DNA of 64,000 bases from Stylophora pistillata (GCF_002571385.2 NW_019217810.1:383609-447608), one strand, 5' to 3'. Positions 396-30,177 are shown, counted from the first letter of the stretch. Notes: generated from the letters alone by a model not told the origin. Translations and numbers: made by a program.

Positions 396-1144
396 CTGTC
401 TAAATCATCCACAGGTTTGCCCTTCCCACCAAGTCCACAAAAGCAGCCATAACCATTGAAATCGATGGGATTTCTCTCAGTGAACTTATAAACCAACAAG
501 CCAAAATTGATAATGTTTCTTTTGGTGGCACTGTCATTACCGTCTTTGATTCGGCATGAAGAAAAATACCAAGTCAGATAAAAGCAAAATCAAGAGAAAT
601 TACAAACAAAAACAGAATCAAAACTAAATGCTGAAACAGATTTATCATCAAAAAATACTTCTTTTATGAGAAAACCAGAAGCTGGATGACCTGCACTTGG
701 TTATAAATTATATTTATTTAATCACTTCAGTTGGGGAAACATAATGCCCTTCTCATTGGCTTTGAAGACCTTTTCTGGGGTGTTACGAAGAAAACGAAAT
801 CTTTTCCTCATCTGCAAATATTCCTGTCATTATTTGAACAGATGGGATCATATCCTCAGTTTAAAGTTACTTTTGTTGTGAAGACTGGCATTTGCAATTG
901 ATTGGTGAAAAGAAGATCGTAAGTCAAACCAAGAGCGAAATTACATCCAAACATCGTATACCGTATTATGATAGTTTGAAGCCCATTGTTTCATTAGAGA
1001 TGGAATCCTCTAATAGATCTGAAGTCCATTAAGAAAACAAAGACAATGTTACTTAAAAGATGTTCAGATATGATTGAATTTTTTACCTCCACTTGCAATG
1101 ACTCCCAACAGTATTGGCCAAAGCAAAAGTGAGTTGCTTCCCAT
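396..1144 (-). CDS. Secreted phospholipase A2 (copy 1), 5' part; remaining exons expected left of the window
   Basis: Exon 1144-1087 encodes the signal peptide [19 protein letters not shown] (phase-1 GT donor). Exon 543-396 encodes [50 protein letters not shown], with the sPLA2 Ca2+-loop YGCxCGxGG. This exon has the same 148-nt length and phases as copy 2. An extra small propeptide exon between them cannot be excluded. Confidence 0.85.
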
Positions 1145-2626
1145 AGCTTAACTTTAGTTCTTGTAAGGATTTTAAGAGAAATTTTCAATCTAAAACCAAA
1201 GAGGCCGTAACCTCTTATTAGTGATTCATTGAACAGTTCTAGCTTCGTTTCAGTATATCAAATGCCCCAACTCTTTCTTTGCATAAAATGGCTTAAGAGT
1301 AATGTTGATTTTCCAAGCCTTTATCATAATGACATAATTAAAGATTTGTTTCCTATACAATGCTACGTACTGCATACCAAAACTTAAATAGAAAAAATTC
1401 AACTCAGTTGATTTTCAATGGAAAAACTTAAATGCCATTAGGTATGTCGGGAAAAAAGAAACGAAAATACAAACAGACGAAAAAACGCCAAAGATTGGAA
1501 AAAAACGGCAAGTTGCTATTTCGATTCTTACTGCACCAGCGATTTAGTTAAAACGAAAAGCTTTGGATGTTGAAATAGTCTAAGACCTCAACAAAGACTG
1601 TTATAATACAAAAAAATGAATAAATAAATAAAAAAGAAACATAATATATACTGCTAATTAGCAGCTTATTCCACTAACCTCAATGTGTTGCTTCCTCTGC
1701 TCTGATTTAACTAAAAAATTTGATTATTATATTTTCCTTATTTACGTAACCCTTCTTTTTCCAAAAATATATTGCATATTTCAAATGACATAAAACCACT
1801 GAATGGACTACCCGAGCAATAGAGTTACCTGCAGTGAACAGTAGCACTTAGATTTTGTCATTGCCCTGATGGCAGGTAATTTCAGGTAGACCTTAGGTTA
1901 TCATTCATAAACTTGGCAGCCTCTTGCATCAACCATGGCACTGAATGGTGCTCTATGTATGTTCTAAGTAAAAAGACACTGGCGCCTTGATGTATAGCAG
2001 GCACCAACAGTCCTGGTCAGAAGCTTAGGACTCCTTCAGAAGTTTCCAGTCAAAAGAAGGAGGAAGTAGGAGAACTGCCCAACGAAAAGAACGCACTACT
2101 TATGCTAGATTTAAAAGACCGGTTGCGAACGTCATCGGCAAATCAAATTTAAAGATTTACGAATGTGGTCGAAGGAGATACCAGGAAGCAAGTCAATTCC
2201 AATACTGTATGATCATGATTTAAAAGTATAGACGTAAAACAGTAGACCCTGTAGCAGTCTCTATGTTTTTTTTTTTTTAAACATATTGCAATTTTTGACA
2301 CGTTTCCAAACCTAATGAACCCAAGCGGGGCACGATTACCTCGTCTATGCCCAAGAAAAAAATCTCGGTAAGAGACTTGACACATGCCTCGAGTTTACGC
2401 GCGGTCCCTATCCACCACATTTTGAAAAGAGGATTTGGTACGTTATAGATTTTTAACACCATCCATGTTCAGCAAATTCATGTAAGACTAACACAATGTC
2501 TGAAGAAGGATATTGTCTTGGCGTAAATGTTTTATTAGAACTAACTTTAACAGAGGCGCGATAGAGTCACCGGCAGAACAAAGAAGTGTCCTTCTTTGAA
2601 CTGTACATGTATTCGACTCGTTCTTT

Positions 2627-28200: not shown

Positions 28201-30177
28201 AATATGAGTCAGCAGGTAAGAGAAAAAGGACCCGTTCTTTGCTTTAGTGAAAACAAATTTTGGCTTTCTAATGTCTAAGGTAAAGGAAAATTCTTCTCTA
28301 GGTAAACTGAGTGGCATCTCAGCGGAACACATGTTTTTCTTTGGTGCACCATGACAAGCGAAAGATGAGTTGACTTGGTTTCGATACAAGTCTTGCATGC
28401 TTGCCTATGTCAGTTTTACTTTGCTGGCTCTATTTACTTTACCTGGTAGTCACCACAAAACGGTCAACTGAAAACAACTCAACAATATCTGATAACTTTA
28501 TAATCAAATTTTAATAGGAGGCAGTGTGGCCGAGTGGTTAGAGTGTCGGACTTGTAATCCGCCGCTCCCGGGTTCGAATCCCACCCTGACCACTGGATCC
28601 AGGCTGTCTCACGGTAGCCCCGAGTTCAGATCCTTGGCCACGCTTGTAAATAGCCAACTGGTTTGCCTTCGGCCGGTTGGGGTTCTTAGACCATTTGCTT
28701 CATTTGTTTGCAAGGACCACAATGGAAACTACTGGTTCACCAGTAATTGTGTAATCCTAACAAGACTTTTTCATTTTTTTTTTTTCATCATAGGCAGTTT
28801 TTAGGATTGAATTTAAAAACATGCCTTTGTGTGTTTGTTTTTCTTTTCAGTTGCTCTACCTGCAGGATATCTAAAACCTAACAGACCAATACAGAAACAA
28901 GGTGTAGGGGTTTGCGCACAACCATGCTCCAAACCAAACATCTGCTACTCCACAGGTTGCGGTGTAGCCTGCTGTGCCTTCCACCCTCATGAAAACAAGT
29001 ATCACCCCCCTGCACGCCTCTTGCCACAGGTGCTCCCATCATGCCCTGGTACATGCGACGACAGCTGTTTCCCGGATTGTGATGATGATTGTTGCACTGA
29101 CATGATGCAGGATGCTCCTCCGGCGCCCGCCGCAATGGCAGGTGCTAGTCCTAGCATGACATGTCCGGGATCTTGTCATTTCTCGTGTTATCCTCAGTGC
29201 AGCCCACATTGCTGTAATACACAATACGTGCCTAACCCATGCCATCCCTCGTGCCCAGCCTACTGCGCGCCAAGTTGTGATAACGCTTGTTGCGCGGCTA
29301 GAAAATCCATAGTTAATAGGTAAGTTTCTCAATCTGTCGGATGCGATAGCATAATTCATTGGTAAAAGCATGATAGCACAGAAGCATGAAAGGAAGAGCT
29401 TTTATCATTTACCCACAATTTGTCAAAATAAAACCGAACATAAAAATATAGACACGCTCTCCCTTATGCCTAGAATAGAAAGATCCAAGAATATAGGTCC
29501 TCGCCCATTCGCATGTAGGGTCGACGATCCTGTCATTGTCCTTGCCTATGCGCTTAACTGCGTGAGACGTTGTAAGTCAAATCCTCTGTTCTTTAACTTC
29601 CCCTTTTTTTTATATCGGGTTACTCTTCTGCCCTCAATCAAATATCTTTCAAGATCTAAGCTCGAATAGCTAAGCTTCAAGATGAGTCAAGAGAATTTGT
29701 GTTCTATCATCCTCTAGCGTACAAGCTCGTCTCTTTGTATTTCCTTTTTATCCCAGATATAGTGATGATATTATGCGACAAATTTCCTGTTGATCACGTC
29801 TCGGTTTAATTCAAAAAGCAAATATTCAACGGGACTCTTTCAGTAATCTACATCTGCACACCACTTAGACTACAGCCTAATTGTTGCGGCTAAACTAACT
29901 ATTAAATACTTCTAGACTCTCCAAACAGTACAGCCGGTACAGAAGTGCCCAACGAGCCATAGCACGTCAGATGTACTTGAGAAAGCATCTCAAACTACCA
30001 TTCAGACGTCCGAAACCAGTAAGACTGGCTCGACCAGTGCGGCCAAGACAGAGGTCTTACTACACGAGACGCGTTCGACCAGAGAGCCTAGGACTTGAAG
30101 AATATGACCGAAGTATCATTCATTCTGCGCAGACAGAAACCTCTTCTAGAAATGGTGCACAGTTTTTAACTGTCTGA
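22204..30177 (+). CDS. Gene C: secreted CAP/SCP (GAPR-1-like) domain, acidic linker, four minicollagen-type CRDs and an Arg-rich tail (NOWA-like), ~698 aa
   Basis: Exons 22204-22252, 22992-23291, 23614-23826, 24263-25066, 28851-29319 and 29916-30177 (2097 nt, phases consistent). Signal MKVLFFVSVLLCAAAKVLA; CAP motifs LDAHNAVRARHG, GENL, WYQE, QFSQLVW, LVARYSPRGN; CRDs in exon 5. The last exon is less certain. Confidence 0.85.
25399..25563. mobile_element. Short MITE in gene C intron 4
   Basis: Inverted ends gcgttcacactt / agtgtgtgaac and internal cgggcac/gtgcccg inverted motifs. Confidence 0.45.
26311..26382 (-). repeat. tRNA-like segment of an interspersed repeat (SINE-like); second copy at 27675-27746
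   Basis: GGCTTGTTAGCTCAATTGGTAGAGCG...GGTTCGAATCCCGTACAAGCC with A and B boxes, a mismatched anticodon stem and repeat-type flanks (cctgatttttttcaggtc). Confidence 0.65.
28517..28690 (+). mobile_element. tRNA-derived SINE
   Basis: A box TGGCCGAGTGG and B box GGTTCGAATCC, followed by a non-tRNA body (cggtagccccgagttcagatccttggccacgcttgtaaatagccaactggtt). Confidence 0.75.

Follow-up and report, generated by a model that had tools for sequence, protein, structure and literature searches.

We analysed a 64,000-nucleotide stretch of the genome of the stony coral Stylophora pistillata (NW_019217810.1, positions 383609–447608; G000:C27 in our numbering), hereafter the window, and ran genome-wide searches in the 397.6-Mb S. 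pistillata assembly. Window positions 396–30177 hold five consecutive genes for secreted proteins: two phospholipase A2 genes (PLA2B and PLA2A), a gene in which cysteine-rich domains (CRDs) stand on both sides of a SUEL lectin domain (gene 3), a gene joining a SUEL lectin to an acidic tail (gene 4), and a gene combining CAP and SEA domains with CRDs (gene 5). A first-pass annotation of the sequence had proposed these genes and their domains, and Pfam searches, a motif scan and splice models recovered all five at the same positions. With about even confidence, we read the stretch as two separate things that abut: a locally evolved trio, genes 3–5, and two members of a PLA2 array.

Three neighbouring genes built from shared modules

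Gene 3 lies on the minus strand at 11097–13605, where GT-AG splice logic alone gives a model of 451 codons in four exons (13605–13542, 13140–12663, 12281–12014 and 11642–11097). Its predicted product begins with a signal peptide, a CRD, a polyglutamine stretch, a polyproline run of 14 residues and another CRD, continues through the SUEL domain, and ends with a variant CRD, polyproline, a CRD, polyproline, a CRD and a basic, tyrosine-rich tail. Four of its CRDs are canonical and one is a variant, with the polyproline runs adjoining them. Pfam places SUEL_Lectin at 12005–12307 on the minus strand with 47.5 bits against a cut-off of 31.4.

Gene 4 follows in tandem on the same strand at 17338–20270, and its model is drawn from RNA contigs, their joints and stranded reads. 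It comprises four exons (approximately 20270–20106, 19340–19276, 18861–18569 and 18200–17338) separated by GT-AG introns, encodes 299 or 314 codons from an ATG at 20196 or 20151 to a stop codon at 17705–17707, and has its transcript 3’ end at 17338; it matches the S. pistillata protein XP_022779846.1 (PFX32057.1) exactly. A signal peptide is followed by the SUEL lectin (18454–18882 on the minus strand, 45.2 bits against the same cut-off) and an acidic, Ser/Thr-rich tail with an isoelectric point (pI) of 4.05; serine and threonine account for 50 of the tail’s 163 residues, and an acidic cluster in it contains three Ser-Gly sites. In both genes 3 and 4 the SUEL domain (PF02140) scores above the gathering threshold and has the cysteine framework of the family, and the best match in the PDB is an L-rhamnose-binding lectin (E 4e-20). 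Bulk RNA mapped over 17100–23099 shows that gene 4 is transcribed. RNA runs contain a fraction of 0.47 of the sampled words of 11000–19000, which, as a joint figure for that interval with no separate counts, suggests that the exons of gene 3 are transcribed too.

Gene 5 occupies 22204–30177 on the plus strand, where an open, all-GT-AG model gives nine exons and 799 codons (22204–22252, 22992–23291, 23614–23826, 24263–25066, 25226–25335, 25991–26049, 28082–28215, 28851–29319 and 29916–30177). Its product is laid out as a signal peptide, a CAP domain, an acidic linker of 268 residues, a SEA domain containing a GSVIA motif, four CRDs (one variant, three canonical) and a basic tail of 87 residues (pI 11.7). 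A spliced orthologous contig from a related-coral metatranscriptome, L007, matches eight of the nine exons in order and without introns, at the DNA or protein level. Exon 6, which contributes 59 bases to the SEA domain, is not long enough for an alignment by itself; the splice model scored against L007 bridges it. Because this contig joins CAP domain and CRDs in one spliced sequence, we regard their link in gene 5 as settled. The CAP domain scores 52 bits from exon 2 alone (23027–23299, plus strand) and 83.9 bits as a whole domain in L007, above threshold. Exons 5–7 are too short for a Pfam score of their own, but exons 5 and 7 align to the stretch of L007 (exon 7 at 71% identity) that carries a SEA match of 28.8 bits against a cut-off of 26.4, and SEA matches were also found on the proteins P0024 and P0057. 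The first-pass description of a CAP-CRD gene was therefore right about the two domains that it named and overlooked the SEA domain between them, in a gene of nine exons.

The tail exon of gene 5 came to light through a consensus donor, AG/GTAAGT, which overlaps what looks like a stop codon following the CRD exon. It is confirmed by L007, by the JGI protein P0024 (760 amino acids) and by Oculina patagonica XP_078359740.1 (848 amino acids), all of which contain both CAP and SEA. Searching the window by tblastn with the basic tails of distant homologs returned nothing significant, and searching 1.84 billion representatives with the CRD exon gave eight matches, all single-exon open reading frames (ORFs) on unspliced contigs, with no CAP domain and no names. 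L007 itself has a frame break at 1040–1050, between two long ORFs (15–1049 and 1042–2472) and within the linker, which is probably an assembly error or a polymorphism.

Genes 3–5 proved to be kin. Across the whole genome, the SUEL domain of gene 3 finds its best paralog in that of gene 4 and vice versa (39–40% identity, E ~1e-16), and the two are sisters, with support 84/90, in a maximum-likelihood tree of 13 SUEL domains in which every row found was retained. Next in rank for both are matches on contig C663, which has GlyXY exons just upstream of SUEL exons. That region (C663, 5–45 kb; loci L016, L018, L023 and L024) holds at least five SUEL-domain loci, two of them with a GlyXY collagen exon just upstream, and by its predicted domains it is likely the nematogalectin gene cluster of S. 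pistillata. A scan of the 64-kb window in all six frames finds the CRD signature C-x3-C-x3-C-x3-C-x3-CC, in turn, at seven places, all of them in gene 3 or gene 5, and 100 shuffles gave no occurrence; the sole genomic paralog of the gene 5 CRD exon at E <0.001 is the CRD exon of gene 3.

Gene 3 thus shares one module with each neighbour, SUEL with gene 4 and the CRD with gene 5, and the earlier description of the cluster as an assembly of three unrelated families does not hold. Since this sharing points to duplication and exon shuffling, the adjacency of genes 3–5 is explained without selection for co-regulation, and the paralogy of both modules together with the layout leads us to regard the trio as a local mosaic that arose by these two processes. 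Of the five genes, only these three make up a convincing unit, linked by more than adjacency, and to this extent the first-pass interpretation is partly supported.

Genes 4 and 5 are conserved in other stony corals. Acropora orthologs of gene 4 (289–302 amino acids) have the same layout and keep the acidic Ser-Gly cluster, and the presence of gene 4 in Acropora means that its family is older than the divergence of complex from robust corals. For gene 5, P0024 and O. patagonica XP_078359740.1, both uncharacterised, share the CAP domain, linker, SEA domain, CRDs and basic tail; over the SEA-CRD part, P0024 shares 56% identity with L007 and 59% with XP_078359740.1, and the linkers differ in length. 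Two ENA contigs of 1,130,991 and 373,890 bases, equated by base count, each appear to carry homologs of both genes, a hint that the linkage of gene 4 to gene 5 is conserved on two other assemblies.

Likeness to known capsule proteins

Hydra NOWA consists of an SCP/CAP domain, a C-type lectin domain (CTLD) and eight minicollagen-type CRDs. Gene 5 resembles it in opening with a signal peptide and CAP domain and in closing with a CRD block, and among 177,635 distinct PDB sequences its CRDs best match Hydra NOWA (2hm3, E 0.0028) and then a minicollagen (1sop). The CRD of gene 3 gives the same order weakly, with a NOWA CRD as best match at a non-significant E of 0.54. Gene 5 differs from Hydra NOWA in having three canonical CRDs and one variant, and in its strongly basic tail.

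The canonical CRDs of gene 3 stand beside polyproline at both ends of the protein, as in minicollagens, whereas its central SUEL domain, five CRDs, polyglutamine stretch and Tyr-rich basic tail set it apart from them. The models of genes 3 and 5 contain no Gly-X-Y run, and because they lack this collagen stretch neither gene is a minicollagen. Nematogalectins combine a GlyXY collagen stretch with a SUEL-type lectin. Genes 3 and 4 are like them in carrying one SUEL domain each and in having the GlyXY-SUEL loci of C663 among their nearest outside relatives, but both lack a GlyXY exon. By its description in the Nematostella study of Sunagar et al. (2018; PMC6161364), the protein NVE3843 is similar in having a SUEL-type lectin without counting among the classical nematogalectins.

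The PLA2 genes belong to a dispersed array

Pfam detects Phospholip_A2_1 on four minus-strand exon ORFs in the window (395–589, 4443–4622, 3543–3791 and 2630–2773). PLA2A is complete at 2627–5243 on the minus strand, an open frame of 167 codons in four exons, with Pfam matches per exon and GT-AG introns throughout; the joining of the exons follows splice logic alone. Exon 1 (5243–5138, from an ATG at 5243) is predicted to encode the signal peptide and propeptide and was chosen by phase, donor score and likeness to exon 1 of PLA2B, exon 2 (4591–4444) carries the calcium loop YGCWCGYGG, exon 3 (3693–3578) the active site CCYVHDMC, and exon 4 (2760–2627) the C-terminal CKCD motif. An alternative start at ATG 4852 or 4870 was rejected, as the strong donor there ends in phase 0, which does not fit the phase 1 required by exon 2.

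PLA2B extends past the left edge of the window, with two exons inside it (396–1144, minus strand): a signal-peptide exon at 1144–1087 and a calcium-loop exon at 543–396 (PF00068, 36.9 bits), joined by splice sites and phase. As in PLA2A, the predicted first exon, from ATG 1144, is hydrophobic and has a phase-compatible donor. Its active-site exon, with the motif CC-x2-HD-x-C, and its C-terminal exon lie 2.2–3.4 kb to the left, beyond a gap of 2417 N that falls just outside the window and within PLA2B intron 2; on the flanking locus L004 they are found at about 7385–7270 and within 6353–6180, which corresponds to about 379.8–381.0 kb of C27, and the catalytic motif sits in the L004 ORF 7241–7429 (minus strand).

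Both genes match group I/II/V secreted PLA2s (PF00068), a set that includes the cnidarian venom PLA2s, in the calcium loop Y-G-C-x-C-G-x-G-G, the catalytic His-Asp of C-C-x-x-H-D-x-C and the C-x-C-D motif. Nothing unusual was seen in either of them. The PLA2A precursor has 12 cysteines, a predicted signal peptide and a short propeptide ending in Lys-Arg, and its nearest solved structures are snake-venom and group V/IIE secreted PLA2s (E ~1e-8). We found at least ten PLA2 loci in the genome. The four closest paralogs of PLA2A all lie on the minus strand of C27, at about 384, 460, 474 and 480 kb, and the interval 459–480 kb holds three further PLA2 genes (L020, L021 and L022): a near-identical tandem pair, at about 460.3 and 474.2 kb, and a single gene at about 479.8 kb. 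PLA2A and PLA2B accordingly belong to an array of at least five minus-strand genes spread over about 100 kb, whose members appear from their motifs to be catalytically intact group I/II-type secreted PLA2s. Genes 3–5, a W2-domain gene, PAT1, a DIRS-like retroelement and other sequence lie inside this array. The position of PLA2 genes beside genes 3–5 carries little weight, because a dispersed tandem array alone would give it; most likely, the adjacency is a by-product of the array and not part of a functional module.

Boundaries, gaps and other features of the window

To the left, the neighbour of the cluster is a MICAL-like FAD monooxygenase gene, and its right boundary is formed by the 3’ exons of a W2-domain gene of the eIF5/eIF4G/eIF2B-epsilon type (31624–32150, minus strand; Pfam W2, 31 bits), which stands tail-to-tail with gene 5. 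The same arrangement recurs in five other coral contigs (L006, L008, L009, L013 and L014), where the W2 gene lies tail-to-tail 1.6–2.3 kb downstream of the gene 5 homolog. No Pfam domain was found in the intergenic ORFs of the cluster, which bears out the first-pass observation that no housekeeping gene intervenes; with housekeeping neighbours on either side and Pfam-negative spacers between, the five genes are consecutive and housekeeping-bounded.

Genes 4 and 5 are arranged head-to-head across a spacer of about 1.9 kb (20271–22138), delimited by the 5’ end of the gene 4 transcript near 20270 and by the 5’ untranslated region of gene 5, which aligns to the orthologous mRNA from 22139. This spacer is a candidate shared or divergent promoter region. 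Within it, a 31-base piece at 21480–21510 reaches an RNA contig depth of 135–173 in all four runs, with loose ends on both sides; it is shared with an abundant transcript or repeat elsewhere and is not a local gene.

The window contains one assembly gap, found by an N-run scan, of 290 N at 5522–5811. It separates PLA2A from gene 3 and belongs to the 5’ flank of PLA2A, whose start codon at 5243 is 279 bp downstream of it; it is non-coding, and since no exon or ORF touches either of its edges, it affects no reading frame. The only other N is a single base at 27517, in intron 6 of gene 5. The same intron holds two tRNA-like elements on the minus strand (26310–26382 and 27674–27746; Rfam tRNA, 50.9 and 48.9 bits), which are probably copies of a tRNA-derived short interspersed element, and a translated motif similar to theirs recurs near 28526–28804.

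Further to the right, 53900–58800 on the plus strand is a retroelement with a reverse transcriptase (PF00078) and a tyrosine recombinase/integrase-like ORF (PF00589) in a DIRS-like layout. Two similar long ORFs on the minus strand (45897–46577 and 49529–50848) have no Pfam match, and the segment between them at 47848–48999 (plus strand) is GC-rich, has a strongly negative AT skew, is open in several plus-strand frames and gives a repetitive translation rich in Arg, Ser and Phe.

A candidate cnidocyst trio and the alternatives

The combination of modules in the trio supports a capsule-type character as far as sequence can indicate it: polyproline-flanked CRDs in gene 3, SUEL domains with nematogalectin-type relatives in genes 3 and 4, and in gene 5 a CAP domain followed by CRDs as in NOWA. 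With moderate confidence we propose that genes 3–5 encode structural proteins of the cnidocyst, whether nematocyst or spirocyst, a cell type that we infer from these modules. On this reading genes 3 and 4 are tandem duplicates of one SUEL-lectin gene, and gene 3 has gained minicollagen/NOWA-type CRDs and polyproline modules like those of gene 5. Through disulfide reshuffling, the products of genes 3 and 5 would be polymerised via their CRDs into the capsule wall or tubule. Glycans would be the ligands of the SUEL lectins in genes 3 and 4, and the acidic Ser-Gly tail of gene 4 would serve as a heavily glycosylated carrier, possibly with glycosaminoglycan chains. The three genes may also be co-regulated. 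Proteins with such modules are known from cnidocytes: Hydra NOWA is a component of the tubule and is thought to bind chondroitin via its lectin domain (PMC10014300), and NOWAs, minicollagen-like proteins and nematogalectins specific to cnidocytes occur in Nematostella (PMC12549020). Sunagar et al. report that a NOWA homolog in Nematostella is cnidocyte-specific by in situ hybridisation, as is NVE3843, a non-collagen galactose/rhamnose-binding lectin with tenfold cnidocyte enrichment (PMC6161364).

Five observations weigh against this assignment. Gene 5 differs from Hydra NOWA at the position of the CTLD, where it has the SEA domain and its 268-residue acidic linker; Pfam scans of the gene 5 exons and of full-length orthologs found no CTLD, and the Nematostella NOWAs are of the CTLD type too, unlike gene 5. 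The SUEL tree does not resolve a grouping of the gene 3 and gene 4 domains with those of nematogalectin type. Gene 4 is acidic, as skeletal-matrix proteins are. In one RNA run mapped from raw reads, depth was 12–20 on gene 4 against none on exons 1–2 of gene 5, so the levels of the two genes differ, at least in that sample; across the mapped RNA runs these two exons had little or no coverage. Gene 3, finally, has an in-frame TGA at 13546–13548, between the signal peptide and the first CRD and four codons before the first cysteine. Exon 1 has a single good GT donor, which follows this TGA, so that the signal exon joined there stays in frame only by way of the TGA; a weak GC donor upstream of it would also keep the frame. 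The 5’ end of the gene 3 model is therefore provisional. An Rfam search of 9800–13700 for a selenocysteine insertion sequence, at E up to 5, found none.

The first-pass annotation had gone further and joined all five genes, PLA2s included, into one co-regulated cnidocyte module supplying wall scaffold, lectin, glycan carrier and toxin. The five genes do stand in a row with nothing recognisable between them, and PLA2s and a CAP protein have been found in isolated nematocysts of Acropora digitifera (PMC4604070). For Nematostella, however, the part of the supplement to PMC6161364 covered here points both ways, the more abundant of the two PLA2 transcripts seen there being fivefold depleted in cnidocytes and the other 2.6-fold enriched. 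PLA2 paralogs of the same subfamily lie 76–96 kb away on the same strand, with the W2 gene, PAT1 and retroelements between, and the 5.9 kb from the gene 3 stop to the PLA2A start contain a Pfam-negative stretch resembling a transposable element as well as the assembly gap. We therefore consider a single five-gene module unlikely: the part of the proposal that survives concerns genes 3–5, which share capsule-type modules and of which genes 4 and 5 are divergently arranged, while the PLA2s belong to a wider, separate array.

A more substantial alternative, which we hold to be possible but less than probable, is that the trio encodes secreted matrix outside cnidocytes, such as an epidermal or mucus glycocalyx, a gland secretion, or calicoblast and skeletal matrix, with CRD-like repeats acting as general disulfide cross-linkers. 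The SEA domain of gene 5 and the acidic, Ser/Thr-rich tail of gene 4 are features typical for mucins and cell-surface proteoglycans. Public annotation of gene 4 calls it only a lectin, or latrophilin/PKD1-like, and the S. pistillata cell atlas places lectins in epidermal cells and in adult calicoblasts (PMC8162421). Against a purely generic matrix, the exact spacing of the CRDs, their flanking polyproline and their best matches to NOWA and minicollagen point to capsule chemistry, and the nearest SUEL relatives outside the gene 3/4 pair include nematogalectin-type loci. As weak evidence in the same direction, neither the accession of gene 4 nor any of the numbers PFX32054–60 or the relevant XP_0227798xx numbers was found in paper texts, for example in skeletal proteome tables. 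The trio could also be neighbours solely through local duplication and shuffling, having since diverged in cell type and function into no functional cluster at all. Paralogy suffices to explain the adjacency, the genes have come to sit in strongly diverged contexts (Tyr-rich basic tail, acidic tail, CAP-SEA), and the read-depth difference between genes 4 and 5 in one run fits such divergence. Yet genes 4 and 5 are head-to-head, their linkage may be kept on two other assemblies, and the three products have complementary biochemical characters as lectin, putative glycan carrier and cross-linker, which together make this reading distinctly improbable in our view.

Hydra has its lectin, glycan-carrier and disulfide cross-linking functions in NOWA, nematogalectin and a chondroitin core protein that is itself unidentified. 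Building on the cnidocyst reading of the trio, we offer as a speculation, and a doubtful one, that stony corals have a ‘split NOWA’, in which these three functions would be distributed over three adjacent, module-shuffling genes co-expressed in cnidocytes; gene 4 would then be a candidate core protein of a cnidocyst glycosaminoglycan scaffold, bound electrostatically by the basic tails of genes 3 and 5.

What the locus means depends on where the trio is expressed. If gland or epidermal, it would be an ordinary cluster of secreted-protein paralogs. If genes 3–5 are cnidocyte-specific, three undescribed architectures would join the short list of capsule structural proteins: one with a lectin set between minicollagen-like ends, one that joins a lectin to a putative glycan carrier, and the CAP-SEA-CRD arrangement. 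They would provide a clear case of capsule proteins built by local duplication and exon shuffling, and would be testable candidates for the lectin-glycan ‘zipper’ that has been put forward for the way tubules invaginate in Hydra.

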